64,000 bases of DNA from assembly GCA_965112735.1 (NCBI GenBank), contig OZ218951.1, positions 1,178,001 through 1,242,000 of the forward strand, in the 5' to 3' direction. Every line of letters begins with the position of its first letter. The stretch's first letter is position 1. The notes beneath the pieces are model-generated. The model worked only from the letters and a program-made list of their open reading frames with translations, was not told the DNA's origin and ran no database searches. Both the position numbers and the translations under genes were made by a program. Shown here piece after piece: positions 8,280 to 59,227 of the stretch. This DNA is from Phaeosaccion multiseriatum (lineage: Eukaryota; Protista; Ochrophyta, other classes).

Positions 8280-8712
8280 CTCTCCTCCTCGAAACAAAGG
8301 TTGAGACCCTCCCTTTCCCCACCCAGCACCCTCTCCAGCGATCCCTCGCCGCAGTGGAAGCTAGCAGCGCCTCTTCTCTGCCTGTGTGTCGAGAGGTACA
8401 GCAGAGAATTTAGGTGGAGGGCATAGTGACGTGAAGAGGGGAATTTTCGGGATCAGGGTTTTCTTCACAGAGATCCACCCAGCCCCACTGGATGCACTCA
8501 CGTCAAGGCTCACCTTCTTTTGCTGAAGGCTTTTGTGGTGTGCTGCGAGTTATGGTGGGGTTATCGTCGTAATATTTATTTGATTGTACGCGGGAGAGAC
8601 CAGAGAGGGGGAGGGGGGGCGCCCGGGGTTTTTCCATGACATACTAATTGAATACATAATGGGCGCGGGTGAGAAGAGAAGCAGAGGGGGGCGTGAGAGA
8701 GGGTGTGGGTCG

Positions 8713-10760: not shown

Positions 10761-10791
<31 letters not shown>

Positions 10792-11781
10792 ATTAGGGCG
10801 GGGCGGGGCTCCACTCCACTCCACGCCACGGCGTCTCGTCCTTTTGGCCTTTGGTTCCTGCTGCTCCCTCCTGTTGCTCTTTCGTTTCCGGGCAGGGCAT
10901 CACCATACCTAACCACCCGCTCTTGTTGGGTACATGTGCGCTCCTGTCTCTCTCTCTGTCGCTTCGTTCGCCTTTTCCCATCGCAGGAGGAGGAGGAGGA
11001 GGAGGAGGAGGAGGAGGAGGAGGAGGAGGAGAGGGGTTCTCCTTTCCCTGGAAGAGCGTGGCAAACGAAGCCTCTTTCCTGTACCCGCCACAAGCCGTCA
11101 TGGGAATGAGAAGCAGCCGCAAGCAGTACAGCGACGGCTCCACCGCAGTACCACTAGAAGGAGGAGGAGGGACAGCAGGGGAAGAGGACTCAGGCGCTCA
11201 CGTGGAGGAGGCCCTGGTGGGCCTCATTGATGCATTTTACCTCATAGCATCAACACCGGAGTTTGCCAGCGAAGCGAAGCTCTGGCCTGCTTCAAGCAGC
11301 AGCTGCTGCAGCAGCAGCAGTGGCTGTAGTGCTAGTGCTAGTGGCGAGGCGGCGGCAGCGTCAACAGCGCTCTGCTCCAGCTTGATGAGGCTTTCTCTGC
11401 ACGCACTCATGCCGGTACGAGGAGCCGCCCTCCAGGTAGTAAGTGCCATTTGTGAGGGCAGCACCAGCAGGAAGGAAGACATGTCGACAGCGCTGAGGAG
11501 AGAAGTCTACCGTCTCGAGGAGGCGGAGGTGGCGAGGAAGGCAAAGGCAGCACAGACGATTCCCTCTACCGACAACAAGGAGGACTCGTCTCCCTCCTCC
11601 TCTTCCGGCCCTGTTCCTTCTAATCGGCTTCTGGTGGCGCTTAGAGTCATCATCGGTGGGGGCTGCGGTTGCGGCATGGAGGAGGATGCCAAGCCGCAGG
11701 TTTCTGCACTGAATTTGGCGGTTGCGCTGTTCCTCGCGCACCACCCTCTCGTCACTGGCGGTAGCAGCAGCAGCAGCAGCG

Positions 11782-11814
<33 letters not shown>

Positions 11815-14800
11815 GCGATAAGGTGTGGGGCTCCATCCGAAGCTCGTTGGAATGTTCCTCTGGTGAGTCATTTGCAACGATGCTGCGGCGTCACGTGCTT
11901 GGTACCAAGTCATCGTCATCTTCACCATCATCGTCGTCCAGCGGGGGGGGGGACGACGCGGGCGCCGCTCAAACGGGCGGCTCAGACAGTCCGTCTCTGG
12001 CGGGGTATCTGTGCGGTGCAGCGTGGTCGGGGCTACCCAGGCATGTTTCAGCAGTGGCGGCGGCTGTTTGCAGCATAGCCAGTAGCCAAGAAGAAGAAGG
12101 AGAAGAGGAGGATGAAGATGATGAAGGAGGAGGAGGAGGTGGTGGTGGTGGTTCACTGGGGGTGACGACAGTAGGAGTAGAGGCAGCCAGACGCCTCATC
12201 GCGGGGTCTCTTTTGGCACCTCTTCGGGACCCAATCAGGGCAGGCGGGGTGCCCAACCTCACCAAGGAGGAAGTCAAGATTTTCAAGACTCCAGCGGGTG
12301 TCTTGTGCAGGAGCGGCAGTGAGTCAGGGGGGGGCAAGGGGGGTAGCAAAGGAGGTAAAGGAGAGAAGGTGGTCAACAAGAACCTTGCAAGGAAGGGCAT
12401 TGACGCCGAGTCCGCGGCATGGGAGGCGAAAGTCCGAATGGAGCTTGACAAAAAGGCCAAGGTGAAGGGTGGGGGGGTGAAAGGGGGGGGTGCTGGGGGT
12501 GGGGGTGGTGGTGGTGGCGCTGGGGAAGGCGCGGGAGGGTCTCTGTCGGCAGAAGAGAAGAAATTACTCACAGAGGAGGCGGAGATTCGAGGCCGCATTG
12601 AGGCGATGAGTAGGGAAGCGAGGGCGTCACTGGCTGTTGTGGTTGGGCCGCTCACGTCCTGCCCCTTGTTGGGACTCAATTTGGGCTTTACACGGGACGT
12701 TTTGGGGCTGTTGGAGCCCCTGCTGGACAACGAGGTACTGCGGTGGCCGTCCTACGAAGGGTGAGAGGAAGAGAGAGAGAGAGAGTTTAGCGAGTTTCTT
12801 ACGTACGTGTGTTTACGTGTGTAGTTACGTACGATTGCCTTTTTCGATCGCACTAAATGTAGGGGCGAGAGAGTTGGAGGAGGGAGAGGAAGAGGGGAGG
12901 AATGTGTTACTATTGTACAGAAACCCGCTTTCCTCCCCAGCATAGACATGCGACGAGACACTCTGTCCCCCTCTCTTGTTGCATGTGTGTGTCCTCTCAA
13001 ACCCTACCCCCCCCCCCTCTCTCTCTCACGACTCCAGCCTCAAGGCGCTTGCGGGCAGCTGCTGTCACGTCCCGGGAGGAGAAGGAGGAGGAGGAGGCCA
13101 GCATCCGCCGGCGGCCGTCATCAGTCCGGAGACGGCCTCCCTCATTGCCCAGGGCCATCTGGCCCTTCGCCTGGCCAAGAGCAGGGGCGCGGCAGCAAGT
13201 AGCCACGCTGTAGTCAAGTGCGTAGAGGGGTTGCTGGATGCCACGTTTCCCTCGGAGTACGGGGAGGAGTTCCCACTGCGCCCGTCCTGCTTTGTTTTGG
13301 TAAGTGGAGGAGAGAGAGGGGAGAAAGGAAGGCCCCTGGGGAGAAGGGGGAGAGGGGAGAGGAATACCTAAAGGGAGGAGAGAGAGAGAGGGAAGAGGAG
13401 GAAGAGGGAAGGTCCGAGCGGGTTTTTTGGCAAGATTTTATCTGTTGCGAAGGCGGGGATGTGCGGGCGTGCGGGCGTGCGAGGACAAAGAGGGGTCGCA
13501 CGAACTTGGTCTCCTGCTGCCTTGTCCTCTGACTTGTCTTGCTCTACTCCTCTGGCACTCGTTTTGCTGTGCAGTGCACCTTTGTAGACGTTCTTACACC
13601 CAGTCAATCAATCAGTCAATCAATGCCGCTCAAATACCGTGACCCCACTTCCCGACACTCCTTACCCCTCTGTCCTGACACTCCTCACCCTTCTGTCCTG
13701 ACACTCCTTGCCCCTCTGTCCTGACAACCCCCCCTCCCCCAAACAGGCGTTCCCCATCATCATGGTGTCGCTGGAGGCCGCGGAGAGCAGGACTCTTTGC
13801 GAGCCAGCGCTCAAGCTTGTCTCCGCCAATGTAGATACCTCATCTGTGCCCTTCCTGCTCCCGGCCCTTTTGGCGGGGGTGCTGAGAGCGTTGGCAAAGT
13901 TCGAGCATGTAGAGCCTGCTCCGGATGTGGTGCTGGCGAACCTCTGTACGGGAGTAGCGGAAGGAGGAGGAGGGGGAGGAGGGGGAGGGGCAGAAGAGGG
14001 CCAGCCGGGGGTGAGGTTTGGGCAGGAGGAGTGGACCCTTCTTTGCGGAGATGAAGGGCTCCTCAGTGCGGACGCCAACGTGCGGCAGGCGGTACTTCAA
14101 GCGCTCATGATGATGCTACTGGAACAAGGAGGAGGAGGAGGAGAGAGTGAGGAGGGGGAGGGAGACGGGGTCTGGGGTTGTGCTCTACCTGCCCAAGTCA
14201 AGCTTGACTTGGAGTCCCGGTTATGGCAGGCCAGATTCGACTCCGACGAGGAAGCGAATGAGCTGGCCAGATCGGTTTGGGAGTCCATGGGGTGGGACGA
14301 ACGCTTGGGCCCAAGTGCTACTGCTGCGGCCGCCGCTGGAGGAGGCGATGGAGCCTTCGCGGAGCCTTTGCTGCAGCTGCTGAAGCATCCTGTTGCTACT
14401 GTGCGTGGGGCATCAGCCAAGGGCATTGCAGCGGCATTGCAGGAGCAACCGGACCACGCCTCGTCCGTGCTTGACGCGCTTGTGAAGATGTACGCCGACC
14501 ACAAACCACCCCCACCCAAGAAGAAGGCAGCAGCAGCAGCAGGAGGAGGAGGAGGAGGCAAGAAGGGGGCAGTTGCGATGGGAGACATGAGTATGGACGA
14601 GTTTTTCGCAGCCCCGGTGGGGAAAGAAGACCAGAGCGATGGGAAGGAAAGCGAAGTGCTCATGAAACGAACCGTTCGAGACGGAGTGGCGGCTACTGTC
14701 GAGGCAATGGGGGAGGCGCGGGCCGTGGCCAGGGGCGCAGAGTTGGATGCCATGTTCACCTTTGTGACTCAGGAGGGTCTGACGGACACGGATGACAAGG

Positions 14801-17800
14801 TTCGAGCGCACATGCTTCGGGGCGGGGCGGTCATGATCGAGGCCTACTGCGCATCATCACAGGATGGCGACGGCGATGACGACGAAGATGGAGGCGTGCA
14901 AGGCGGGCGCTTTCTGGACACGTGCGAGGCTATTGTGGCGACCAAGAAGGGAGGAGGAGGAGGAGGAGAAGAAGAGATGCGTGCTATGGATTGGCGACGG
15001 GAGGGCGTGGTGGTGCTGATGGGGGGTGCGGCCAAGCACCTGAGCTCGTCTTCAGGGGACTCGGCCGCTGAGTCCAAGCGGATCGTGTCCATCGCAAACA
15101 CACTCATTCTGGCACTGTCCACACCGTCCGAGGCGGTGCAGAGGGCCGTGGCTGACTGCCTGGCACCACTCGTCAAGCAGGCACCAGCAGTAAAGGCGGA
15201 GGGGCCTGCCATTCTCAAGAAGCTGCTGTTGCAGTGCGTGTCGGGAGAGAAGTACGGAGATCGAGTAGGGGCCGCATTTGGGGTGGCGGCTGTGGTCAAG
15301 GGCATGGGTTTGGCGGTGCTCAAGAGGGAAGGCGTCATCACCACCCTCGAAGCGGCATGCAACAGTGGTGGGCGTGGGGGCGACTTTAAGGCCAAGGAGG
15401 GGGCGCTGCTGGCCTTCGCCTGCATGTGTGAACGATTAGGGCTGCTCTTTGAACCCTACGTGATTGTCATCTTGCCCATCTTGCTCAAGAGCTTCAGCGA
15501 CCCTTCGGACAAGGTGCGCGCGGCGGCGAATGACTGTGCGAGGGCCATTATGAGCAATCTCTCTGCCCACGGTGTCAAGCTTGTCTTGCCCGAAATTCTC
15601 AAGTCGTTGGGGGACAATGCGTGGCGCACCAAGCAGGCCGCGATTCAGCTCCTCGGCTCCATGGCGTTTTGTGCCCCTCGGCAGCTGGCGGCGTGCCTGC
15701 CTCAGACGGTGCCTGCGCTCACCGAGGCCTTTGGAGACACCCACCCGAAAGTACGTGAGAGCGGCAAGAAGGCTTTGGAAGACATTGGCAGCGTGATTCG
15801 CAACCCTGAGGTTGCTCGGCTGTCCATGACACTCATGGCGGCTTTGTCGGACCCTGCCAAGCACACAGTGAGTGCGCTCGAGGCCTTGCTCAACACGGAG
15901 TTTATGCACTCCATCGATGCACCTTCCCTGGCGCTGCTCGTGCCGGTGCTGCAGAGGGGCTTGAAGGATCGCAGCGCGGACGCCAAGCGCAAGGCCGCAC
16001 TAATCACGGGCAACATGTGCGGAATGATCTCCTCGCCCAAAGACCTCTACCCGTATCTGCCTGCCATCCTGCCCGGTCTCAAGGCCACTGTACTTGACCC
16101 CATCCCGGATGTGCGTGCGACGGCCTCCAAGGCGCTGGGGGCTCTCGTCAAGGGCATCGGCTCAGGGGCAGGTGGGAGTGGTGGAAGTGGAGCTGCGGCG
16201 AGTGGAGCAGCTAATGCCGCGGTCTTGCAAATGGAGGAGCTGCCGGCGTGGCTCGTTGTGACGCTCAAGAGCGTGGACATATCTTCCAGTGAGCGGAGCG
16301 GTGCTGCCCAGGGCTTGTCGGAGGTGCTCGTGGCGCGTGGCCCGGAGGAGGCTCGCACAACGCTCGCCTCGCTGCTTCCCATGGCGTCACACCCCAAGGC
16401 GGCGGTGAGGGAGGGTGTGATGCACGTGCTTACCTTCCTCCCCACGGCGCTGGGGAGAGACTTTTCCAAGTGTATCAGCGATGTACTGCCCACCATCTTG
16501 GCGGGTTTGGCCGATAATGTGGATACGGTGAGAGAGGTGGCGATGCGGTCGGGGCAAGTGTTGATCAAGTCGCACGGCAAGGGCCACTCGGGAGACATTC
16601 TGCCCTCGTTGGAGGAGGGCTTGCAGGATGAAAATTGGCGCATCCGACAGAGCTCTGTGCAGCTGCTGGGGGACCTTCTCTACCTGCTGGGCAACACCAA
16701 GCAAGTCTCCCTCGAGGAAGGGCCGGGGGAGGAGGACGATGCCAGAGGAAGCAACCGGGCGGCGACGCTGGTGGAGGCAGCGCTGGGACCAGAGAAGCGC
16801 AATTCTACGATGGCCAAGCTGTATTTTATGCGTTCAGACACCAGCTCTGTGGTCAGACAGAGTGCGTTGCAGGTGTGGAAGACAATCGTGCCCAACACAC
16901 CGGCCCTGCTGCGTGAGGTCATGCCGGTGCTGATTGACTTGATCGTCACCTGCCTGGCTGGCGGCTCTGTCGATCAGACCATCGTAGCCGGGCGGGCCTT
17001 GGGGGACATTGTCACCAAACTGGGAGACCATGTGTTGCCAGAAGTGGTGCCCTTCTTGCGTAAGGGGTTGGCGACGGGCGATGAGCGAACGCGACAGGGT
17101 GTGTGCATTGGTTTGGCAGAGGTGATGGAGTGTGCGACCAAGCGCCAAGTGGAGCAGTTCCTCGACACGCTGGTGCCTGCCGTGCAAGAAGCACTCTGCG
17201 ACCCGTCCGCGTCGGTCCGCGAACAGTCCGCAAAGGCGTTTCAGACGCTGTACAGGCAAGTGGGGGCCGCTGCGGTACAAGAGGTGGTGCCTGACCTTCT
17301 TGCACAGCTCGCGAGAGAGGGTGCCGATGAGGAAGCCGTGGACGTGCGTGCAAGGGCGGTGTTCGGGCTGAAGGAGGTGCTGCAGCTTCGCTCGAAAGAG
17401 CTGCTCCCTCTGCTTGTGCCCAAGCTCATTGCTCGTCCCATTACCACCTCGCATGCCCATGCTCTGGGGGCGGTGGCCGAGGTGACGGGGGGAACGATTC
17501 ATATGCATCTCAACATCATCCTACCGCCTCTGTTTGAGGAGCTGGCAGCCGTGCAGCAAGAGGTGGAGGCAGGCGGGGACTCTGTTCGAGCAGAGGCGGT
17601 GCAGGCGTGTGCCATTGCTCTGGCGTCTTCCATCGAGACGGTGGGTGTGAATTGGCTCTGCACGGGCATTGCCGAACACATGCACTCCACCCAACCCGCC
17701 ATTCGGAGGAGTGCTGCCTGGATGCTGGGCTGCTTTGCGAAGGGCACCTCCGCCGACTTTGGGCCTCAGATACCCATGCTGCTCAAGGAGATGCTCTCTC

Positions 17801-18318
17801 TCTTGGCCGACAGAGATACCGCCGTATTGAAGGCCAACTGGACAGCCTACAAGACCTTCAACGAGCGAGTGCCCCCGGAGGCGCTGGTGACGCACCTCAC
17901 CTTTTGCCGCAACATTATTGCCAGCATGGTGAGCGATGCCAAGCACCGCAAGGGAGGGGTGGGGACGGAGGAAGGCGCCGTCATCCTCCCCGGTCTCAAC
18001 ATCCCCAAGGGTATGGAACCTCTCCTGCCCATGTTCCAACACGGCCTCATGCACGGCTCTAGCGAGCTGCGAGAGGCAGCCGCCACGGGCATCGGCGAAC
18101 TTGTGCAGCAGACAGAGCCCAAGATGCTGCAGCCCTTCATCATGAAGATTACAGGCCCCTTGATCCGCATCGTGGGGGACCGAGCCTTCCCCCCCGGGGT
18201 GAAGGCGGCTGTGCTCAACACACTGGGCTTGCTGCTGCGTAAGGGAGGAGTGCTTCTCAAGCCCTTTGTGCCGCAGCTGCAGCCCACTTTCGTAAAGGCC
18301 CTCGCGGACCCGGTCAAG

Positions 18319-18368
<50 letters not shown>

Positions 18369-20622
18369 ACGTGTTACGTGCGCTTTTGTTTGTGTCCTTG
18401 TCTCTCTTCGCTGCGCCTGGTGGATTGACAGTTTCAAACGTCTGATTGATTGTTGACCCGTTCCTTCGGCTTCTTCGTCCTCTGTGTGTGTTTTGTGTCC
18501 GCACGCTTTCGCTCTCCGCAGGTGGTGCGAGCCCGCGGCAGCGAAGCCCTCCTGTCCCTCATGAGTCTAAGCACTCGTGTGGACCCGTTGGTGGTGGAGC
18601 TTGCCAACAACGCTGCCAAGTCCGTCAACAACCCAGGTGAGGGGTGAGGGGTGAGGGATGAGGGGTGAGGGGTGAGGGGTGAGGGTACCCTTTTCGACTG
18701 AGACTGGAATTGAGTCTGAACCCAGGCGAAACAGACTGGACAAATACAAACTTCCTCTTTCTTTGTTTTATAATGAAGTACCTGTTCTGTGTGGGTTGGC
18801 CGCGTTTCATCTGTTCCATTCCATTCCCCCCCCCAGCAAGCCCCCGCCTCACTCAATCCACACTCTACTTTCTCCCTCCTCCTTCCCCCTCTCCTTCGGC
18901 CCCGACGATGACGCACACGCACACGCACCCTTCAGACGCGGTGGACGGAGTGGGTGTGAGTCTGACAATGCTCGAGGCCCTAAGGGGGGTGCTGCGGTCC
19001 CCCGCAGGCAGCAAGGTCACTGCCACTGCCCTCTCCACTGCCGCCAAGGCCTCCCTCCTGCCTCTGCTGGCGGACCAACACGCGGAGGTCCGAGAGGCTG
19101 CCGCCATTTGTATGGGGCTTTGTATGGGGCTGCTGCGTCCCCGTGAGGACGCGGAGTCCTTCGTCAAGAGCCACTTGATGCAGCGTAGCAGCACCGCTCC
19201 CAGCACGGATTGGGCCGAGCATCACGGCACTTGTCTGGCCAGAGCGGCCGTCTGCAGGTGCCGTACCTTGTGTTTGTGTATTAAGTGCGTTCCTGTTTTT
19301 GTGTGTGTTTCAGGTTGAGTTTGTTGACCGACGAGAAGCAGTTATCGACCACATCGACCATCTATCGAATGTGGCGTGCGTTGGTGCTCGCATTGCGCTT
19401 CCTCCCTCCCTTTTTCCTTATACCGTACACTTATATACCTATTATGTACCTTATACCTCATACCGCATGCCCAATACCCCTTATCTCATACCCTATACCC
19501 TGCACAGATACGCCGTGGAGGTGGCGAGCAGTCCCGGACTGTTCCCCGAGATGCTCGAGTCAGGCTTGGAAGACGCCAAAGGAGGGGAAGAGGAGCAGGA
19601 TAGACAGTTCAAAGCAGCGGCTGCTCAGGTGCTGAGCATGGCTCTGTTTGCAGCCATGAAGAGCGGCAAGGAGGCGGAGGTGAAGAACAGTCTTCCTAAG
19701 GTGCGCGGGGGGGGGGGAGGAGGTAGGGGTGAGGGTGGTGGTGGAGGAGGAGGAGGGGGAGCAACAGCAGCAGGAGGAGGAGGAGGGGGAGGAGGAGAAG
19801 GAGGAGGGGATGAGGAGAAGGAGGAGGAGGAGGAGGAGGAGGAGAGGGAAGGAGGAGGAGGAGGAGGAGGAGGAGGAGGAGGAGGAGGAGGAGAGGGAAG
19901 GAGGAGGAGGAGGAGGAGGAGGAGGAGGAGGAGGAGGAGAGGGAAGGAGGAGAGGATGATGATGATGATGATGCTTTGGGAGTCTTTCACGGGCACCCAC
20001 CCCCATCCACTGCCATCCAGCGTGGGTATTCTTAGACCCACTCCCCCCCCCCCCCCTCAGCCCATTTCTTTCTTTCTACTCTGAACTTACCCAGAGCAGC
20101 GCCTGGGCCTCTCTCCTGTCGTCCTTACTGACTCCCCACCCCTCCCCTGCCCCATGCACTGACCCAAAACCACACCTCCCCAACAACACCCAACAAACAC
20201 CACCCCCCAAACAACACCACCCGAACACGCTAAATCAGGTGAGCGCTGCCCTTGCGGCGATGGCAACAGACGACGACGGAGAGGTGCGCACTTCCGTAGC
20301 AAGGGGCGTCAAGGACCTCTGCAAGCTCGACCCCCTCGCCATGAAGCCCGGCCTGGTGACCCTCCTGCCCCCTCTGATGGCGGGCTGTAAGAGTGACCTT
20401 ATGTCAGTGAGGAAGGCGTGTGAACGATCGCTATTTTATGCGCTGGAGGTGTCTGCTGGAAAGCCTCGCTCGGATGCCGCACTGGAAGAGTTTGCGGCGG
20501 CGGCGGTGGCGGCGGGAGAGCCCGGGGTGGGGAGAGCTGCGAAGGATGTGGCAAGAAAGGTACTGTCCAAACAAGTTGGCGTGGGGGGCGGCAACCGCAG
20601 TGAGGACGAAGAGGGTTTTTGA
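8713..20622 (+). CDS. GCN1: eIF2-alpha kinase activator GCN1 (HEAT repeats), about 8 exons
   Basis: Exons at about 8713-10718, 10987-12760, 13038-13299, 13747-18318, 18522-18636, 18936-19257, 19509-19700 and 20239-20622. Diagnostic segments: LSTPSEAVQRAVADCLAPL, LFEPYVIVILPILL, LSAHGVKLVLP, WRTKQAAIQLLGSMAFCAPRQL, HSIDAPSLALLVP, NWRIRQSSVQLLGDLL, ITGPLIRIVGDR, LKPFVPQLQPTFVKAL. The start codon is uncertain (alternative at 8659). Confidence 0.95.
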
Positions 20623-22930: not shown

Positions 22931-25400
22931 ATGCCCTTCTTTCTCCGCGTACTGCTAGGCTTTTTGCCACTGCTGGTGATGCTGGGGTCGGCAGCGGCCC
23001 AAGGATTAATCGAAGTAGAAGTCAGCCATAGCTTTGGACTGCGAGGAGAGGTGAGAGAGAGCACGAGAGGTTGATGGGAGGGAGGGGTGAGAGCGCAAGA
23101 GATTGACTGATGGGATGGGAAAGCGCAGGGAGGAGATGGATAGCAAGAACATCGGCTTGTGGAGATGGGGAGTAAGCGCGTTGTTCGTTGTCGTGGTGTT
23201 GTTGTGGTTGTTGTTGTTGCTCCTCTCTCTCTTCATAACTAACCTCCACATGTTGTTCCTTGGTGTTCTCTGCTTTGAAGCCGTCCTCGCGAGGGCAACT
23301 GGTGATTGATTTAGGCCAGCACGGCAACATGGGATCCGCGTCGGCGTTTTTCACGGCCCCGTTCGAGCTCAGTGCCCAAGAAGCAGCCGACTTTCAGGTA
23401 CAGCAGTGGATGCAACAGTATGTGCACAGTGTGTGCACAGTGTATTCACAGTAAGCTCGAGATCATGTCGTGTGCCGGTCATGTTCGTCTGTAATCGAAT
23501 GGCCCATGAGCGAGCGAGCGAGTGGTGGCATGTCATCAGCCAATCAGCATCACTCATCAGTCAGGCCGACGATGATAACGCGTTTTTCTCTGCTGTACTC
23601 CCCCTCTCTGTGCCCCGTCCCTCTTTCTCCCTCTCCGTCTCTGTCACCCTCCTCTCTCTGACGGAGCTCAGGCGCTGGTGGAGGCGGATGGATTGTACCG
23701 CATCAGCATCCCGGCGTCCACCGGAGCCAGCATGCGAGGAGGGGGCAGTGGTGTAGACGGAGAGGGGGGGGGTGGTGATACGGGACCGGTGATCATGAGC
23801 AGCATTCGGGCCTGTGAGCTGCGCAAATCGGGCTTCAAAGACGACATTTCAATACATCTTGACGACGAGGGCTTTATCGTGGGGTGAGTGAGTGAGTGAG
23901 GAGCGGAAGAATCATGTGTAGGAGGAGGAGGAGGAAGAGGACTGCAGTGTGTGCGTGCGTGCACTCATGCGCATGTATGTGCACGAATGACCTCCTGGAG
24001 GGGCTCTTAGAGGGGCGTGTTGGGACTCCGAAACTTTCAGAGGACTTTCCTCTCTCCTTCTCTTTCCTGCGTCTCTTGTGATGAGCTGCGGTGCGCGTGC
24101 TTGCGGTGCGCTTGCTGCTGTCGCATCTTGGGTGGTCCCTTGGAGGACAAGCTTCTTCCCTGGCACGCTTCTTGGCTTGGCCCTGACCCATCCCTACTGT
24201 CTGCCCCTTCTACTCCTCCTCCTCCTCCTCCCTCTCATCTTCCTCCTCCTCCTCCTCCTCCTCCTCCTCCTCCTCCCTCTCATCTTCCTCCTCCTCCTCC
24301 TCCTCCTCCTCCTCCTCCTGCTCCTCCTGCTCCTCCTCCTCCTCCTCCTCCTCCTCCTTCTCCTCCTCCTCCTCCTCCTCCTCCTCCTCTTCCTCCTCCT
24401 CCTCCTCCTCCTCCCCCTCCTCCCCCTCCCCCTCCTCCTCCCTCTCCTCCCCCCTTCCAGAGTCGACTACAAGGCTGCTGTGGGTCCACTGGCAGCCACG
24501 AGGGACTGCAAAAAGTTGGGTCCCCCCCCCAACGACACCACTTTCCAAAGCACCATCCGAGTGGTCCGCCCCATGGCCGCTCACGCCATCAACACGCTGG
24601 TCATGGCCGCACATCCCCCTCCCGGCCTCGCTGGGGTTAAGGGCCTCACGGTAAGAGAAGTCACGGTGTTGTCACGGTGTTGTCACGGTGTTGTCACGGT
24701 GTTGTGTGTGTGTGTGTTTGTGTGTGAGTGTGTGTGTGTGGAGAGTCTCTGCACAGGTGAATTGGGTTGCCCTGTATTCCGCCCCCCTCCCATTGTATAC
24801 ACTACCACTGCACTCCCTCCTATGTTCCCAAAACCGACCATATCATTTTGCTGCTGTTCCTTTCCCTCTCCCTCCCTTCCTCCCTCTCTCTCACCCCCCC
24901 CCCCCCCCCCCCCCCCCCCTCTCTCTCTCCCATGTGTGTGACAGCCGGAAAAGGACAAGGCAGCAAAGCAGGCGGAGAAGAGCTTCTTGGGCAAATACGT
25001 AAGATCTGGATGGCAGTGGATGGCAGTGGATTGCTTTCTCTCCTCTTGTCCCATGAAACATGTCCCTCCCTCCCTCCGTCCCTCCCTCCGTCCCTCCCTC
25101 CCTCAATCTTCCTTTGGACTCCTCCTTCCCCCCACCTTTCTTTGTCTCTCACTTCGTTGTCCCTACTCTGTCCGCCCCTCCTTCCCCCCTCCCTTCTTTC
25201 CCACCCTCCCTTCCAATACACACGTCACCATCCCGTGCACTCACTCATGACGATGATGGAATGATGCCCGATTGAAGTGGATGTACATCTTGCCCGTGGC
25301 CATTATCATGATGACGTCAGGAGGTCCGCCGCCGGAGGGAGGAGCAGCAGGGGCCGCGGGAGGGGCGAGCGGAGGAGGAGGGGGAGGGGGAGGGCGATAG
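22931..25400 (+). CDS. EMC10: ER membrane protein complex subunit 10, about 6 exons
   Basis: Signal peptide, VSHSFG, RGQL, GLYRI, SSIRACEL..SGFKDDISIHLD..G...GVDY, and a C-terminal EKSFLGKY|WMYILPVAIIMM transmembrane motif characteristic of EMC10. Confidence 0.88.
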
Positions 25401-35155: not shown

Positions 35156-36071
35156 CAATCTGGAAGTTCTTCCGGCGCGTCACCCTCTCCCATTCGACGC
35201 ATTTGCGCACATGGACATGGTGGAATGGGAAACTCGACCACCCGCCACAGCCAGCAAGGGAGCTTAACATACACAGCAGGCAGCACTGTGCACGCACGGG
35301 ATAGGGTGTACAGCCCATGTGCTCTGCCATGACTCCCACCACCCCGTTGCGCAGCGAAACGGAGCAGAACTGGGGGCTGGGTGGGCGCTTGGAAGGGAGG
35401 TTTCCGAGGATTCCCTCTCGCACTTCCGTCGCTGCTGTGGGACTCCTTGCGGCGTTGATACCTCCCACACCCACACCCTGAGCTGAGCTGAGCTGAGCTG
35501 AGCTGAGCTGAGCGGAGCGGAGCGGCCGATAGAAGTGCCGGAGCGCAAGATGGAGACCATTTGCTTGTTTTCCCACAGCAGCCTCCTGCCTCTCGCTCTC
35601 TCTCGCAACCTCCAAGTAGAGGAGCCTCATCAGACCGCACAATGATGAGGCAGCGCACCGGCACCTGTACTACGCTGGGGGGATACGATACGCCCTGCCG
35701 ATCTATCCCCTCTGAAAAGAGAGCTGACGAAAAGCCAGGCTCGGGTCACAGGGTTGACCATTGAAGCAAGGGGGGGGGGGGGGGGCGGAGCTTCGGCCCA
35801 GCAGCAGAGCCCTCCCTCCCCACCCCACACTCGGGAGGCGCAGAGAGGGGAAGGAATTCGGCCCCTGACATGCTTCTGAGACACGCCAGCCCAGAAGCAG
35901 GAAGCAGCCTTGGCCCTCATCATTGCCTTATTACATGGCTTTCCCCCAGAACCTGGGGGGTTGGTTGGCGCCGGCCAGAAGCAGGAAGCAGGGTCGCCTC
36001 AGAAGTATGTCAGGGGCCGAAAGGAATCGTGTGGATGGAGATACTGACACACGCTTCATTCGGTAGCCTCT

Positions 36072-36152
36072 ACGTAATAAAGGAAGGTTTTCTTCTCCAT
36101 CAAGAACTCTCACGTAATAAAGGAAGGTTTTCTTCTCCATCAAGAACTCTCA
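36072..36152. repeat. 40-bp direct tandem duplication
   Basis: ACGTAATAAAGGAAGGTTTTCTTCTCCATCAAGAACTCTC occurs twice back to back. Confidence 0.9.
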
Positions 36153-42366: not shown

Positions 42367-43509
42367 TTATTTCTTTACTTGCTGCTTCGTGCGGTTCCTG
42401 TCAGAGCTGTGCATGTGGTCCATGTAATGCTTAGCAAACGCCACCATGTGCGCGTCCCGCTGCCGCAGTTGCTCTAACGGGTCCTCGTCTCTTGTTTGCA
42501 CATACTTGTCTATGAAGTTGTAGATTTCCATGTCTCTGACCTTACTCTGCGCCTTCACTTGCTCAGCTTGCTCACGCATGCCCGACAGGCTTTGCTCCAG
42601 CTCCTTGATGCGCTTTCGCTGCTCTTCTATGGTCTGCCTCTGCTCCTTCAGCTGCGTGGCGGTGTCTCCCATCCACGCAGCCGCCGCTGCAGCACGCACA
42701 AGATCCTTCGTTTCGTCTCCACTGCTTCCTCCTCCTCCTCCTCCTCCTCCTCCTCCTCCTCCTCCTCCTCCTCCTCCTGCTCCTGCTGCGGCTGCTCTAC
42801 CCTTGCCCCCCTCCTTTGAAGCTCCTCCAGCGCCCCTCTTCCGTTTCCACCCTTGCTCTGGATACAGGAACTCCCCCTTCATGAGTAGAAAGTTGGATAC
42901 TCCCCGCGTCTCCCCCATCACCATCATCCTCTGCTGCTGTTGTTGTTGCGGTGCACCCCCATTTCTCCAGCTGCCCCCCCCACCCCCTGAGCCTGGACCC
43001 ATCTGCTGCTGTCGGCGAAGTATATCTGACTCCCTTCTGCCTCCGACCCCCCCTCCCCCACCCGAGCGGCCTGGACCGCCATGTGCCACCATTCCCCCTC
43101 CCATACTCTTAGTCTTAGCCTCCATCTGACCCGATGGCGATGCGTGAAAATCTCTGTGCTCCGCACAGTACAGGCGTTTTGCCCCGATCGCAGACCCTAT
43201 TGCGGGAAAGCTGGCCGTCTTACTGCAGCCTGCTGTAGCACACTGCCTCCTCTGTCTTTTCACCTTTGGAACCGCCAAAGGGACATGCTCAGGAGCCTTG
43301 TGCAGCGTGCAGTACAGAGGCGGATGGCTGCCCGGCAAGCCAAATCCCGCTCGCTTGTTGCATCCCATTTGGCGGCACAAAAGACTTGCGTGACTTCCCG
43401 AGAACGACTGCTGATTTGCCACAGCAGGCGGACTCTGCAGGAATGGGCGGCTGCTGCCCAACGCATCATGCGGCTGGTGCTGCTGCCCTCCTCCTTCTCC
43501 GGAATGCAT
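42367..43509 (-). CDS. Protein with two EsV-1-7 type Cys/His repeats and a C-terminal coiled coil
   Basis: CRQMGCNKRAGFG...LYCTLHK and CATAGCSKTASF...LYCAEHR fit the C-x4-C-x-K-x-A-x-F...YC-x2-H pattern. Heptad-rich QLKEQRQTIEEQRKRIKELEQSL follows. Confidence 0.75.
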   Translation of the reverse strand: MHSGEGGGQQHQPHDALGSSRPFLQSPPAVANQQSFSGSHASLLCRQMGCNKRAGFGLPGSHPPLYCTLHKAPEHVPLAVPKVKRQRRQCATAGCSKTASFPAIGSAIGAKRLYCAEHRDFHASPSGQMEAKTKSMGGGMVAHGGPGRSGGGGGVGGRRESDILRRQQQMGPGSGGGGGSWRNGGAPQQQQQQRMMVMGETRGVSNFLLMKGEFLYPEQGWKRKRGAGGASKEGGKGRAAAAGAGGGGGGGGGGGGGGGGGSSGDETKDLVRAAAAAAWMGDTATQLKEQRQTIEEQRKRIKELEQSLSGMREQAEQVKAQSKVRDMEIYNFIDKYVQTRDEDPLEQLRQRDAHMVAFAKHYMDHMHSSDRNRTKQQVKK

Positions 43510-44015: not shown

Positions 44016-45041
44016 CGGCACCGCAAGGATCCCGCCCTGCCGCCTGTCACCGGAGTCAGCGAGACGCTGCTGGTAGCGGGAGACTACTTCTTTTGAGTCC
44101 TCGAATGGAGGCCGGCCAGACCGTTGGCTTGTGAGCACATGGAGTATATCCACGAGCTCGACTAGCCGCTATCCGAAGATCACCGACTCTCTCCGGGGAG
44201 CTACGATGCAAGAGGCGGGCATGTTCCAGGAAGAAAGAGCGAACTGAAGGGGAAGCGGGACAGATGAGGCTTCAGCCAAGAAGGCGGGAAGGCTGCTCAG
44301 AGAGAAGAGCATACGGTGAGGAAAGAGGGAGCAAAGTAAAGTACCCTGAGGTAGATTACATGTGAAGAATGAAGTGGAGAAAACCAAACCAGCCTCTGAG
44401 CACGGCACAGCGGCGTGTGCGCGTGTGTATTTACCCTTTCTGCTCTTCTCCAGGGCCAAACTGCCCATCCATCGACCCCTGCCGCGGCGCCAGCCGGCGT
44501 GCTATCTGCTTTACCGAGTGCCAGAGAGTATGCCCGTGCCGGATAACAACAGAGTGTGGAGGGTAGTGCGAATGTGGAGTTGTTGGGTCCACCCCTGTTC
44601 AGATGTTTTCGCCCTTCACTCGCTACCCTCCACACTCTGCTATCGAAGGTGGACAGCCTTGCCTACACTTGCAAGATGGGTATGCCCGTCCGAGGAGAAG
44701 GAGACCGCTGCACTATCAACGGCTTCATCGGCAGCAGAGAGGCGAGTTGAGCAACCCCTCTGGCTTGTGGATAAGAATGGGTGGGCCGACCGAGTGCTCA
44801 TCTGCCCAAGCCTCTTCTCCACTTGACCACCCTCCGTCGCCTCCCCTCCCTGTCGATTGAGGCGGTGCATCTGCTAAATGCCGACAAGCCCTGTACTATA
44901 GAATGATGGCGCCTCGCATAGAGCACGTTTTGTCATCGGGTTTCAACAGCTCGAGTCCCGAGGTGCCCGGAGAAGGGTCCTTCACGCGCTCGCACGCTCG
45001 TCGCAGCACCTTCCGTCCGCGCCTCTTCTTCTCATTCGCCG

Positions 45042-48079: not shown

Positions 48080-48353
48080 GTCGAGTCCTCTCCCCCCCCT
48101 CTCTCCTTCCCCTCTGGATACTCGCCAACTGTGATGGGGTTTTTTGATTTTTGTTTTTGGCGCGCTGGCGGCTGCTTGTTTCTTTCTTCACTAATTAATG
48201 CACTTCACTCATTTTCAATATTTTATTCAGCTCCCCGCACGAGTTAGTAGTCAGTAGTCACGCCCTGACCCCTGCTTTGAACACCCCGTCCTTTCCTCCG
48301 CACAAACAAAGGGCTTGCGTATCCGCACCACTAGCACTAGCAGAGAGGAGAGC

Positions 48354-48390
<37 letters not shown>

Positions 48391-48465
48391 CTACAGCAGG
48401 AGCGATACGAGAGGGGGGCGAATTATACTTATCAAGAAACTGAAGACAACCAAAACAACAAAACG

Positions 48466-49768
48466 ATGATGGAGGCGCGAGGACAGCGAGGGGGGGCTTT
48501 GGCTTTGACGATGATCGCGCTTGTCGCTCAGACGGTCACAGCGGGCGTCATTCCGGGGCCCACTCCCTCTCCTCTGTGCGACAGCGGCATCATTTGCCGA
48601 CCAGGCCGCTTTGCAACTGAGTACGTGTGCTGTGAGGAGGGAGAAACCTGTGACGGGAACAGCGGAACGTGCTTCGACCCCAACGCCGAGGACTGCTTGG
48701 TGGAGGCGTGCAAGACAAACTGGTGAGTTGCACGGACAAACTCACCCCCTCAGCCAGAGGAGGGCTTTGCAATTGCTCCTCGATCTGACTCTCCGTGCCC
48801 TGTTCTCGCTCGCTTACTTCAACTCTTTCTCGCAGTTGCGCCGGTGACACGTGCAACTCCAGTACCGGAGAGTGCTTTGATGCCTCGGATTCCGAGTGCG
48901 GCTCGTCGAGCTCCCACGGGGAAGGCGCGGAATGCATCAACGACGGGGACTGGTAAGTTGGCCGCAGCGGCCATCACCACCTGAAGTACGCCAGAGAGTG
49001 ACGTGCTTGGTTCCAACGGAGGCTTGGACTAGTGAAAACGGTCTGCTTCAAGGAGAGGAGGGGGGGGGTATCCCCTTCTTTTTGTTAATGTCCCCCACGT
49101 ATGTCTTGCTCTCTACTCCCTCCCTTGCTTCACTCAGCTGCGACAAGATGTATTGCTTTGGGTCCAGTCCGGAGCAAGGACGGTGCAGATACCGAGACGA
49201 GGATAAGTGCCAAAACACTAGTAGCGGAGGAGGAGGTCGTGGATGCTACTACTACACAGACTGGTGCGCTGGCGGGGGGCAGGAGCGAGCAGCTTGTACT
49301 CTCTCTCTCTCTCTGTCTCCATCTCTCTTCGTCTCTCTCTCCCCCTCTGACCCACCTCTCCCCCCCCTGCCCCCACCCACACAGTTGTGAGGGAGACCTA
49401 TGCGACACCAACGGGTTCTGCAGCCCGTACACTACTCCCAGAAATTGCGTTCGAACGGACTTCCCGCTGCCCAACTCCTCCCGCTTTGGCGGCGGCAAGT
49501 ACTCCGAGCTGGGCGGCTGTGAAGCCCTCGAGTTTTTCGATGTGTGCTCCTGCTACTCGGACTTGTGTCTCTGGAACAGCGAGACGGCGACATGCGACAC
49601 TCTCCCGGTGAGTTACATGGATGGCTATGGCACCTCACACACTCAGGAAGGAAGGAAGTAACGAACGAACGAACGAAGAGTAGGAAGGAAGGACCGAGAA
49701 AACTAACGAAACTCTCTCACCCGCGCACCCCTCAACGCCCTGCTTCTTCTGCTACCCCCCCCCCCCTG

Positions 49769-49810
<42 letters not shown>

Positions 49811-50776
49811 TTCTTGTTGCTTCCCTATGTTCCGTAGCCTGCCACGCCCCCTCCCACCCCCACCAGCAACGGAGAAGACCTCTTCCCCTGCTGCCGCGAG
49901 GAGCTGGTGGCCGGAGTCCCTCGAGCCTGCTACGTGGACGAGAGCTGCCTCGACACCCCTCCCGGCGGCAGCTTGGGTGGGCTGGGCTGCAACGCGGATG
50001 GAGTTGGAAACTGCCGCTTCTGCGGATGGGACGTCTATGCCACCAACGAGTGCCCTCAAGAGGGCACTCCTCCTTCCCCCACTCCTCCTCCACTGGCCAC
50101 CATGCCCCCGACGACCGTGCCCACCCCAGGGACACCTCCCCCTCCCACGCCTCCTTCCCCCACTCCTCCTCCACTGGCCACCATGCCCCCGACGACCGTG
50201 CCCACCCCAGGGACACCTCCCCCTCCCACGCCCCCCCCTGTGATTCCTTCGGTGGACTGTGGCAGGTTGGGGTGGGCGGGCAGCTGCGGAGCCTTCACTG
50301 ACGCTGCCTCGTGCAACTGCTGGACCTCTTCCTCCTTCGCGTGCTCGTGGTCCGGCAACAGCTGCACGGGAGGTGGCAGTAGCCCTACCCCCACCCCTCC
50401 CCCTACTCCTACTTCGCCCACGCCCCCTACCCCGCCTACACCTCCCACGCCTCCCCCTGTGGTTCCTACGGAGGTGGACTGTGGCAGGCTGGGGTGGGCG
50501 GGCAGCTGCGGAGCCTTCACCGACGCTGCCTCGTGCAACTGCTGGACGTCTTCCTCCTTCGCGTGCTCGTGGTCCGGCAACAACTGCACTGGCGGTGGTG
50601 ACAGCGGCCCAACCCCCACTCCTCCCCCCTCCTCGACCACCCCTATAGACACTGACTGCACGCGGCTGGGCTGGGTCGGATCGTGCGGGGGATACTCCTC
50701 CCAGGGCGAGTGCGAGTGCTGGGCCGCTTCGTCCTTCGCGTGCGCCTGGAGCAGCGCCGAGCGGCAGTGCCACTGA
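48466..50776 (+). CDS. Secreted Cys-rich/Pro-Thr-rich modular protein, copy A, 5 exons
   Basis: Signal peptide GALALTMIALVAQTVTA and Cys-rich exons at about 48466-48722, 48836-48952, 49138-49263, 49386-49607 and 49838-50776. Contains a GGLGCN...CRFCG module, PTPP linkers and three DC.RLGW.GSCG...C.CW..SSFAC.WS...C repeats. Confidence 0.85.
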
Positions 50777-51008
50777 GGATGTACCTACTGCTACCACCGC
50801 GGAGCAAGGCAGGCAATTGTAACGCCGTTCCGTACCACGCGAGGGAGTATATTCGGTCGATGAGACAATGACAGGGATAAACTTGCACACTATTCGTTCG
50901 TGTGGGTAGAAGAATGATTCGGCCTGTGGCCGTTGTTCAAGCATGTGTTTCAAATCCTTTAGGTTTGCGCATACGATAAAAATAAAATGTCTGAGGGCCT
51001 GCACATGG

Positions 51009-51096
51009 TCGGCTCCAGGCACGCCTAGCGGGGTTGGTTCTAGGCCGTAGGCCGCTCACTTCCCAGCCCCAGACCGCTTGTAGGCAGCCGCTAGGA
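51009..51096 (-). mobile_element. Degenerate terminal relic of the element-1 family (paralogous relic at 55021-55107)
   Basis: TCGGCTCCAGGCACGCCTAGCGG resembles the element-1 TIR. TAGGCCGCTCACTT..CAGCCC...TAGGCAGCC matches the reverse complement of the element-1 right subterminal region (about 51790-51845). Confidence 0.65.
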
Positions 51097-51412
51097 GGAC
51101 CCACCTCGCCGCGAGCGCGCGGGTCCCCTTGGCAGCGAAGGGCGAGGCGGAGTAGGCGGGAAGGGAGAAGACGACGAAGACGACGATGGCTGCTGGGGGC
51201 GACGATTCGCAGGAGGGTGGGCTGGGGCTTTAATGGGGCTGGCTGCCCGCCCTCCTCGCTCGCTCCGCAGATTGGCAACTTCAACACTCCAGCCATCAGG
51301 CAGTCATGGACCTTCCTCGCTCGTCGAGCCTGCGCTCGCTGGGGGTCGCGTGCGCGCCCCCTTCCTTGGCCAACAACGGGAGGCGTGAGAATGGCGAAAG
51401 GCGAATCAAATT

Positions 51413-51937
51413 TCGGCCCCGTGCACGCCTAGCGGCCTAGGCCTATTTTGGAAAATTGCCCGGCCTAGCGAGGGCCGTAGGCCCTCGGCCTATTTATAGG
51501 CCGCCTAGGCGGCGGCCTAGGCGGGGGCCGGAGGCCCGCGGCCTAGGGCAGACGCCAACTAGGCGCAGGTCCAGGGCAGGAATAGCTATGCTCGTATGCC
51601 CTTGGGCTGGCCCGGAACCCGCCCAAGTGTCGTCAGTTTTAAGCAAATGTATTGCATGGGATAAGTGAGGAGTAGGCTTGGTTCGTGTTGTCTCTTTCCG
51701 CCTCGCTGGCCCTACGAGGAGTGCAGGCCTACAGGTGTGCTGCTACCCACTGGCTGGGCGGCACCACGCACGCGCCCACTGTCACTGGGAGGCTGCCTAG
51801 AGGCGGGCTATAGGCCGCCTAGGGCTGAAAAGTGAGCGGCCTAGAGCGGCCGGAGGCCGCCGGCCTAGGCCTATTTCGGCCGAAGGCCGAGCGGCCTAGC
51901 GGCCTAGAGCAAAACCGCTAGGCGTGCATGGGGCCGA
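51413..51937. mobile_element. Non-autonomous TIR element 1 (MITE-like, 525 bp), TSD CAAATT
   Basis: 23-bp TIRs TCGGCCCC(G/A)TGCACGCCTAGCGG (22/23 match). CAAATT lies at 51407-51412 and 51938-51943. Many internal GCGGCCTAG motifs. Absent from the paralogous site near 55420. Confidence 0.92.
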
Positions 51938-51954
51938 CAAATTGATGCATAAAA

Positions 51955-52081
51955 TCAACCCCTAATACACTATCGCCCGCATTCTCGATGCGCGCCGGCT
52001 GGCGCCGGCCGATAGCGGATAGCGTGCCGGCTGGCGCCGGCGATAGCGGATAGCGGATAGCGGATAGTGTATCAGGGTTGA
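51955..52081. mobile_element. Non-autonomous TIR element 2 (127 bp), TSD ATAAAA
   Basis: About 20-bp imperfect TIRs (TCAACCCCTAATACACTATC versus reverse-complemented TCAACCCTGATACACTATC). ATAAAA lies at 51949-51954 and 52082-52087. Internal GATAGCG repeats. Absent from copy B. Confidence 0.88.
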
Positions 52082-52089
52082 ATAAAAAA

Positions 52090-52232
52090 TCGGCCCTGGA
52101 AGAGGTTATCAGATTACTGATTACAGCCGGCGCAGCCGGCCTGATTACTGATTATGGCGCCAGCCGGGCCTGATTACTGATTATGGCCGGCGCCAGCTGA
52201 CCGGCGCACACTGTAACCTCTTCCAGGGCCGA
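52090..52232. mobile_element. Non-autonomous TIR element 3 (143 bp), TSD AAAAAA
   Basis: Perfect 19-bp TIRs TCGGCCCTGGAAGAGGTTA. AAAAAA lies at 52084-52089 and 52233-52238. Internal GATTACTGATTA occurs three times. Absent from copy B. Confidence 0.92.
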
Positions 52233-52494
52233 AAAAAAGACGTGGAAGAGGGCGGAAAGGGCTGAGGCCGTCAAGTGCCATCCCCCACGATTCACGCCCT
52301 GACCCCTGCTTTGAACACCCCGTCCTTTCCTCCGCACAAACATAGGGCTTGCGTATCCGCACCACTAACACTAGCAGAGAGGAGAGCGGAGCAGCAGCAG
52401 CAGCAGCAGCAGCAACAGCTACAGCAGGAGCGATACGAGAGGGGGGCGAATTATACATATCAAGAATCTTGAAGACAACCAAAACAACAAAACG

Positions 52495-54787
52495 ATGATG
52501 GAGGCGCGAGGACAGCGAGGGGGGGCTTTGGCTTTGACGATGATCGCGCTTGTCGCTCAGACGGTCACAGCGAGCGTCATTCCGGGGCCCACTCCCTCTC
52601 CTCTGTGCGACAGCGGCATCATTTGCCGACCAGGCCCCTTTGCAACTGAGTACGTGTGCTGTGAGGAGGGAGAAACCTGTGACGGGAACAGCGGAACGTG
52701 CTTCGACCCCAACGCCGAGGACTGCTTGGTGGAGGCGTGCAAGACAAACTGGTGAGTTGCACGGACAAACTCACCCCCTCAGCCAGAGGAGGGCTTTGCA
52801 ATTGCTCCTCGATCTGACTCTCCGTGCCCTGTTCTCGCTCGCTTACTTCAACTCTTCTCGCAGTTGCGCCGGTGACACGTGCAACTCCCGTACCGGAGAG
52901 TGCTTTGACGCCTCGGATTCCGAGTGCGGCTCGGGCTCCAACGGGGATGGCGCGTTTTGCAGCAACGACGGGGACTGGTAAGTCGGCCGCAGCGGCCATC
53001 CACCACCTGAAGTACGCCAGAGAGTGACTTACTTGGATCCGACGGAGGCTTGGACTAGTGAGAACGGTCTGCTTCAAGGAGAGGAGGGGGGGGGTATCCC
53101 CTTCTTTTTGTTAATGTCCCCCACGTATGTCTTGCTCTCTCCTCCCTCCCTTGCTTCACTCAGCTGCGACAAGATGTACTGCTTTGCGGCCAGTCCGGGG
53201 CTAGGCCAGTGCAGATACCGAGACGAGGATAAGTGCCAAAACACTAGTAGCGGAGGAGGAAATCGTGGCTGCTACTACTACACAGACTGGTGCGCTGGCG
53301 GGGGGCAGGAGCGAGCAGCTTGTACTCTCTCTCTCTCTCTCCATCTCTCTTTGTCTCTCTCTCTCCCCCTCTGACCCACCTCTCCCCCCCCTGCCCCCAC
53401 CCACACAGTTGTGAGGGAGACCTATGCGACCTCACCGGGTACTGCAGCCCGTACACTACTCCCAGAAATTGCCTTCGAGTGGACTTCCCGCTGCCCAACT
53501 CCTCCACCTTTGGCGGCGGCAAGTACTCCGAGCTGGGCGGCTGTGAAGCCCTCGAGTTCTTCGATGCGTGCTACTGCTTCTCGGACTTGTGTCTCTGGAA
53601 CAGCGAGACGGCGACATGCGACACTCTCCCGGTGAGTTACATGGATGGCTATGGCACCTCACACACTCAGGAAGGAAGGAAGGAACGAACGAACGAACGA
53701 ACGAAGAGTAGGAAGGAAGGACCGAGAAAACTAACGAAACTCTCTCACCCGCGCACCCCTCAACGCCCTGCTTCTTCTGCTACCCCCCCCCCTCCTGATG
53801 CTGCTGCTGCTGCTGCTGTTGTTCTTGTTGCTTCCCTATGTTCCGTAGCCTGCCACGCCCCCTCCCACCCCCACCAACAACGGAGAAGACCTCTTCCCCT
53901 GCTGCCGCGAGGAGCTGGTGGCCGGAGTCCCTCGAGCCTGCTACGTGGACGAGAGCTGCCTCGACACCCCTCCCGGCGGCAGCTTGGGTGGGCTGGGCTG
54001 CAACGCGGATGGAGTTGGAAACTGCCGCTTCTGCGGATGGGACGTCTATGCCACCAACGAGTGCCCTCAAGAGGGCACTCCTCCTTCCCCCACTCCTCCT
54101 CCACTGGCCACCATGCCCCCGACGACCGTGCCCACCCCAGGGACACCTCCCCCTCCCACGCCTCCTTCCCCCACTCCTCCTCCACTGGCCACCATGCCCC
54201 CGACGACCGTGCCCACCCCAGGGACACCTCCCCCTCCCACGCCCCCCCCTGTGATTCCTTCGGTGGACTGTGGCAGGTTGGGGTGGGCGGGCAGCTGCGG
54301 AGCCTTCACTGACGCTGCCTCGTGCAACTGCTGGACCTCTTCCTCCTTCGCGTGCTCGTGGTCCGGCAACAGCTGCACGGGAGGTGGCAGTAGCCCTACC
54401 CCCACCCCTCCCCCTACTCCTACTTCGCCCACGCCCCCTACCCCGCCTACACCTCCCACGCCTCCCCCTGTGGTTCCTACGGAGGTGGACTGTGGCAGGC
54501 TGGGGTGGGCGGGCAGCTGCGGAGCCTTCACCGACGCTGCCTCGTGCAACTGCTGGACGTCTTCCTCCTTCGCGTGCTCGTGGTCCGGCAACAACTGCAC
54601 TGGCGGTGGTGACAGCGGCCCAACCCCCACTCCTCCCCCCTCCTCGACCACCCCTATAGACACTGACTGCACGCGGCTGGGCTGGGTCGGATCGTGCGGG
54701 GGATACTCCTCCCAGGGCGAGTGCGAGTGCTGGGCCGCTTCGTCCTTCGCGTGCGCCTGGAGCAGCGCCGAGCGGCAGTGCCACTGA
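52495..54787 (+). CDS. Secreted Cys-rich/Pro-Thr-rich modular protein, copy B, 5 exons
   Basis: Same exon structure as copy A. The C-terminal 289 aa are identical, while exons 2-4 carry clustered substitutions. Confidence 0.85.
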
Positions 54788-55542
54788 GGATGTACCTACT
54801 GCTACCACCGCGGAGCAAGGCAGGCAATTGTAACGCCGTTCCGTACCACGCGAGGGAGTATATTCGGTCGATGAGACAATGACAGGGATAAACTTGCACA
54901 CTATTCATTCGTGTGGGTAGAAGAATGATTCGGCCTCGGGTCGTTGTTACAAGCATGTGTTTCAAATCCTTTAGGTTTGCGCATGCGATAAAAATAAAAT
55001 GTCTGAGGGCCTTCACATGGTCGGCTCCAGGCACGCCTAGCGGGGTTGGTTCTAGGCCGTAGGCCGCTCACTTCTCAGCCCCAGACGGCTTGTAGGCAGC
55101 CGCTAGGAGGACCACCTCGCCGCGAGCGCGCGGGTCCCCTTGGCAGCGAAGGGCGAGGCGGAGTAGGCGGGAAGGGAGAAGACGACGAAGACGACGATGG
55201 CTGCTGGGGGCGACGATTCGCAGGAGGGTGGGCTCGGGCGTTAATGGGGCTGGCTGCCCGCCCTCCTCGCTCGCTCCGCAGATTGGCAACTTCAACACTC
55301 CAGCCATCAGGCAGTCATGGACCTTCCTCGCTCGTCGAGCCTGCGCTCGCTGGGGGTCGTGTGCGCGCCCCCTTCCTTGGCCAACAACGGGAGGCGTGAG
55401 AATGGCGAAAGGCGAATCAAATTGATGCATAAAAAAGACATGCGTTGAAGAGGGCGGAAAGGGCTCAGGCCGTCAGGTGCCATCCACTAAAAGTAAAACA
55501 GTTGAGTTGGTTCTCAACACCCTAGAAGAAGAAATTCATAAG

Positions 55543-59227
<3,685 letters not shown>

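Follow-up and report, generated by a model that had tools for sequence, protein, structure and literature searches.

In the 64,000-nt window of the Phaeosaccion multiseriatum genome analysed here (contig OZ218951.1, positions 1,178,001 to 1,242,000), one copy of a ~3.2-kb tandem duplication carries three short inserts at a site that is uninterrupted in the other copy. The locus raises three questions: what the inserts are, when and why they accumulated at a single site, and what kind of transposase moved them.

Anatomy of the inserts and the empty site

The junctions of the inserts were set by reading positions 51200-52500 and 55200-55700 and were then located by script. A script also connected the host sequence on either side of the inserts (~110 nt), and the product was compared with copy B; comparison of the separate pieces gave the same result. 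Outside the inserts, the flanks and the short intervening spacers are identical to copy B at every base, as expected from the initial annotation, which had recognized an empty site there. None of the three insert positions bears a footprint in copy B. The same annotation had described inserts of 525, 127 and 143 bp, each with its own TIRs, a TC start, a GA end and an exact 6-bp TSD. Our analysis confirmed these junctions to the base, and the three inserts are referred to below as MITEs 1, 2 and 3 (Table 1).

Table 1. Positions of the elements, the duplicated segments and the intact site in the window.
Feature	Position	Strand	Description
MITE 1	51413-51937	.	525 bp; TIR 22/23; TSD CAAATT at 51407-51412 and 51938-51943
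MITE 2	51955-52081	.	127 bp; starts TCAACCC; TSD ATAAAA at 51949-51954 and 52082-52087
MITE 3	52090-52232	.	143 bp; TIR 19/19 (perfect); TSD AAAAAA at 52084-52089 and 52233-52238
MITE 4	35858-36020	.	163 bp; TIR 22/23; starts TCGGCCC; TSD AAGGAAT (7 bp) at 35851-35857 and 36021-36027
Degenerate older end related to MITE 1	51009-51061	.	In copy A; 20/23 to the MITE 1 TIR plus a colinear internal piece
Equivalent older end related to MITE 1	55021-55081	.	In copy B
Tandem duplication, copy A	48257-52283	+	Three inserts near its 3' end
Tandem duplication, copy B	52292-55487	+	Site intact
Paralogous empty site	55414-55439	.	In copy B; 26 bp, 19/26 A/T

The TSD length is well constrained. Shifting the boundaries by one base in either direction eliminated the TSDs of MITE 1 and MITE 2, and 6 bp is therefore the sole consistent length for these two elements. 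The TSD of MITE 3 lies in a run of A residues; with the element ends taken from the TIR, 6 bp fits there as well. The TIR of MITE 2 is ~20 nt long and contains one indel and one mismatch. The TSDs of MITE 2 and MITE 3 share four bases of the original site, so the order in which these two elements arrived is not readable from the sequence.

The longest ORF lying wholly within any insert encodes 70 aa and falls in repeat-rich GC DNA. When folded as single strands, MITEs 2 and 3 form long hairpins, with z-scores of -5.4 and -7.2, respectively. No tRNA or Rfam family was detected at or near the insertion sites. Small and non-coding, bounded by TIRs and TSDs, and matched by a clean paralogous empty site, the three inserts are very probably MITEs, that is, non-autonomous cut-and-paste TIR transposons, with each family represented by one copy in the window.

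Chance expectation and the duplication junction

We scanned the window with a detector that required an exact terminal seed of 8 nt, a TIR identity of at least 12/14 and an exact flanking repeat. The scan returned two structures with a 6-bp repeat and one with a 7-bp repeat; MITE 2 was missed only because of the indel in its TIR. In 40 dinucleotide-preserving shuffles, the mean number of structures per window was 0.025 for 6-bp repeats and 0.05 for 7-bp repeats.

These data bear on whether the inserts could have arisen by repair synthesis, gene conversion or mis-assembly where the two copies of the tandem duplication meet, a notion encouraged by the position of the cluster, only ~50 bp from that boundary. 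Against such an origin, the inserts are three separate sequences, each with its own TIR and an exact TSD, and the shuffles put the chance expectation near zero. Moreover, a further element ending in the same way, MITE 4, occurs in unrelated sequence 15 kb from the cluster. We consider an artefact of the junction highly improbable.

The top inverted repeats of the window are of another kind. They are formed by (GGA)n arrays paired with complementary (CTC/CCT)n arrays at 19743-19956 and 24213-24450, and also at 275-406, 3853-4117 and 5235-5316, in inverted orientation and 4-5 kb apart. These arrays are simple sequence rather than transposon ends. The window also contains a 1.3-kb (GTCT)n microsatellite of ~325 units at 56895-58195, 99% pure, which accounts for the extreme AT skew and the open reading in all six frames at that position.

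Timing relative to the tandem duplication

Copies A and B are 96.8% identical over 3.16 kb. Both contain an older, degenerate end related to MITE 1, which therefore predates the duplication. A partner end and a flanking repeat were sought for the fragment at 51009, and neither was found. The intact inserts, confined to copy A and opposite a clean site in copy B, arrived after the duplication, in agreement with the initial annotation, which had dated the insertions to the time since that event. The MITE 1 lineage was thus present before the duplication and inserted again afterwards.

The duplicated gene lies on the + strand; its copy A start codon (ATG) is near 48466 and its copy B counterpart near 52495. 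Paralogue A thus precedes the insert cluster, and paralogue B follows it at a distance of 260-1080 bp, its ATG being ~260 bp downstream of MITE 3. A Pfam search of the gene revealed no domain, save for one weak match below threshold. In each paralogue, an 81-bp proline-rich unit is present 2.1 times in tandem, at 98% identity (50065-50232 and 54076-54243).

Kinship among the families

MITE 4 has the same terminus as the cluster but a longer TSD. If each end of the element takes one more base, the TSD becomes 5 bp; a symmetric 6-bp TSD is impossible. The initial annotation had treated a 6-bp TSD as the mark of the class and had stated that other copies lacking one would count against its reading. 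Within the window, MITE 4, at 7 bp, is such a copy, and the 6-bp length is not fixed. A 40-bp unit, repeated 2.2 times, is present at 36068-36152, 50 bp downstream of MITE 4.

The outermost heptamer, TCRRCCC, is common to all four intact elements, and the TIRs of the four families diverge beyond these 7 nt. The internal repeats also differ. MITE 1 has GGCCTAG in its two subterminal regions (eight occurrences, versus 10 in the whole window), and MITE 2 has five copies of GATAGCG together with a 32-bp internal tandem unit. MITE 3 contains three copies of a 12-nt unit, and MITE 4 two copies of a 15-nt unit. A GC-rich motif is nevertheless common to MITEs 2, 3 and 4: all four occurrences of the 9-mer TGGCGCCGG in the 64 kb fall within these three elements, which jointly make up 0.7% of the window. 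The inserts had been described as largely unrelated, a description that does not accommodate the heptamer common to all or the GC-rich internal motif of MITEs 2 and 3. Judged by these motifs, the families are related, yet they are too divergent for a single mobilizing enzyme to be assumed.

Elsewhere in the window, at 44445-44500, a 15-nt sequence resembling the 3' end of MITE 3 adjoins the GC-rich motif of MITEs 2-4 and may be a decayed remnant. The order of the motifs is inconsistent with an intact element, and the sequence was rejected as such.

Target choice and stacking

Hexamers with at least five A/T are scarce in the window (3.5%), whose G+C content is 59%. Each of the three target hexamers of the cluster is nonetheless at least 5/6 A/T; were targets picked at random, this would happen with a joint probability of 4e-5. 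As a whole, the 26-bp site falls within the top 0.5% of the 26-mers of the window for A/T content.

A/T richness alone is insufficient to explain the stacking of three inserts. By arithmetic from the window counts, the patch provides 13 of the ~2250 A/T-rich hexamer starts, and a second and third hit in this patch would be expected ~3e-5 of the time, even if only A/T-rich hexamers were used. Because the patch holds such a small share of these starts, a regional factor must add to the A/T preference. This factor may be open chromatin in the spacer, a tolerance of insertions there, or attraction by the ends of resident elements. With its position 400 bp upstream, the older fragment is consistent with a landing zone in long use.

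Search for a transposase and further copies

A Pfam survey of 58 ORFs in the window detected no transposase, integrase or related domain. The host genes that it identified include those for GCN1, a mitochondrial carrier, protein disulfide isomerase, RNase PH, an ankyrin protein and a protein with the EsV-1-7 cysteine motif. No identical record of the mitochondrial carrier was found; its best matches are 74-78% identical and occur in brown algae, Tribonema, Phaeothamnion and Chrysoparadoxa, which places the host within or close to the brown and yellow-green algal clade of the stramenopiles. The GCN1 homologue, at 8584-20619 on the + strand, is seldom interrupted and has exons with very long open reading, 1582 aa in one case, which suggests that it is intron-poor, unlike in typical brown algae. 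The EsV-1-7 ORF, at 42367-43509 on the - strand, has two of these cysteine-rich motifs; brown algae, and the large DNA viruses that infect them, are known to carry this domain.

We then compared the TIR patterns with other sequence collections. Viral contigs yielded no match. Three matches in metagenomes were lone 19-20-mers in bacterial coding sequence, with no partner end, and were dismissed as chance. Superfamilies are defined by the transposase and are called from it.

Comparison with known superfamilies

Helitrons have a 5' TC and a 3' CTRR, generate no TSD and insert between A and T. Only the 5' TC fits the present elements, which have TIRs and TSDs, and this class was rejected.

The initial annotation had set the TC..GA ends of the inserts apart from the termini of other eukaryotic groups with ~6-bp TSDs. 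The list on which it drew was incomplete: although hAT elements normally generate an 8-bp TSD, those of hAT5, hAT6 and hAT7 are 5, 6 and 7 bp, respectively, with hAT6 belonging to an animal lineage and hAT7 to rust fungi (PMC12730594), and the TSDs of MuDR range from 4 to 10 bp (PMC10045372).

The likeness to hAT extends to TIRs of ~20 nt, short subterminal repeats and a TSD of 6 or 7 bp as in the named lineages. In Ectocarpus, hAT-1_Ec32 has TTGGC..GCCAA ends, a 23-bp TIR and an 8-bp TSD (PMC12477816, supplement 3). The TCGGC..GCCGA ends found here differ from those of the Ectocarpus element at one position per end. By contrast, the TSDs of the present elements, 6 bp in three MITEs and 7 bp in one, fit the minority hAT lineages only and differ from the 8 bp of Ectocarpus hAT. 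Nor do the ends of the MITEs appear to fit the usual terminal pattern of hAT. A short-duplication transposase of the hAT type is our best single guess for the partner, and it is offered tentatively.

The partner could instead belong to another known superfamily, whether MuDR-like, the P-like clade of Ectocarpus, Dada or an integrase type (IS3EU/GingerRoot or Polinton), which we regard as possible rather than probable. For MuDR, the variable TSD of the superfamily spans the lengths observed here and the putative MuDR MITEs of Ectocarpus (DNA9-N) likewise favour A/T-rich targets, but those families have very long TIRs, of 117 to >500 bp, and a 9-bp TSD (PMC12477816). The P-like families of Ectocarpus have a 7-bp TSD but CAAGG ends (PMC12477816). 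Dada generates TSDs of 6-7 bp, which are both of the lengths seen here, and targets genes for small RNAs (tRNA, snRNA and 5S) (PMC8869645); the Ectocarpus library includes one Dada family (PMC12477816). The insertion sites in the window, however, are plain A/T-rich intergenic DNA with no small-RNA gene. IS3EU/GingerRoot elements resemble three of our four elements in having TIRs and a 6-bp TSD, but they end in TA..TA (TAYGG..CCRTA), sometimes TG..CA (PMC10045372), as opposed to TC..GA. Polinton/Maverick elements also generate a 6-bp TSD (PMC10045372) but are large, virus-like and protein-coding, with a polymerase and an integrase, whereas the inserts of the cluster are 127-525 bp and non-coding.

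The last reading considered is that the TC..GA, 6-bp class represents an undescribed transposase superfamily in which one enzyme mobilizes all of the families. The heptamer and the internal motif common across families are consistent with this idea, as are the TA..TA ends of IS3EU/GingerRoot. The literature searched contained no match that pairs these terminal letters with a TIR, and no match for families with a 6-bp TSD in stramenopiles. Similarly, among the listed entries of the curated Ectocarpus library supplement, none starts with these ends and no DNA family has a 6-bp TSD (PMC12477816). The combination of TC..GA ends with a 6-7-bp TSD thus has no match in the literature and the listed library entries that were compared. 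Unclassified MITEs are nevertheless routinely logged in such genomes, the Ectocarpus library alone holding 51 'DNA/Unknown' families (PMC12477816), and ends vary widely inside superfamilies. Short-TSD lineages of hAT and MuDR have already been described, and the transposase that would define a new superfamily is unseen in the window. The differences in TIRs and subterminal repeats between the families further argue against a single enzyme. Overall, we consider a new superfamily unlikely. It is similarly doubtful, in our estimation, that the TCRRCCC elements with 6-7-bp TSDs are the offspring of an uncatalogued eukaryotic transposase lineage, perhaps restricted to brown and yellow-green algae, that prefers A/T-rich hexamers. 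The MITE families described here are new, though of an ordinary element type.

Proposed history and implications

The anatomy of the elements, their empty site, their non-autonomy, their A/T-rich targets and their relative timing are direct observations at this locus, and they can be assembled into a probable history. A transposase encoded elsewhere in the genome would recognize the MITE ends and join them to target DNA at a cut staggered by 6 nt, and repair of the gaps would leave the 6-bp TSD, in one case 7 bp. Either the enzyme or the target DNA would favour hexamers rich in A/T, a scarce class in this G+C-rich genome, and the spacer between the paralogues may have served as a regional hot spot or as a tolerated landing zone. 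The older MITE 1-related end came first and the tandem duplication next, after which copy A alone received the three insertions.

As a natural record of transposition, the locus is clean: one paralogous empty site provides the exact boundaries of three families, and the older fragment shared by the two copies brackets the tandem duplication in time. Through the insertions, the region immediately upstream of one of the young paralogues gained ~0.8 kb of foreign DNA, and regulatory divergence between the paralogues is a possible consequence. Many DNA families in stramenopile genomes are unclassified. If the terminal class and the TSD length hold genome-wide, curators of these genomes would gain a defined MITE group that can be traced to an autonomous partner.
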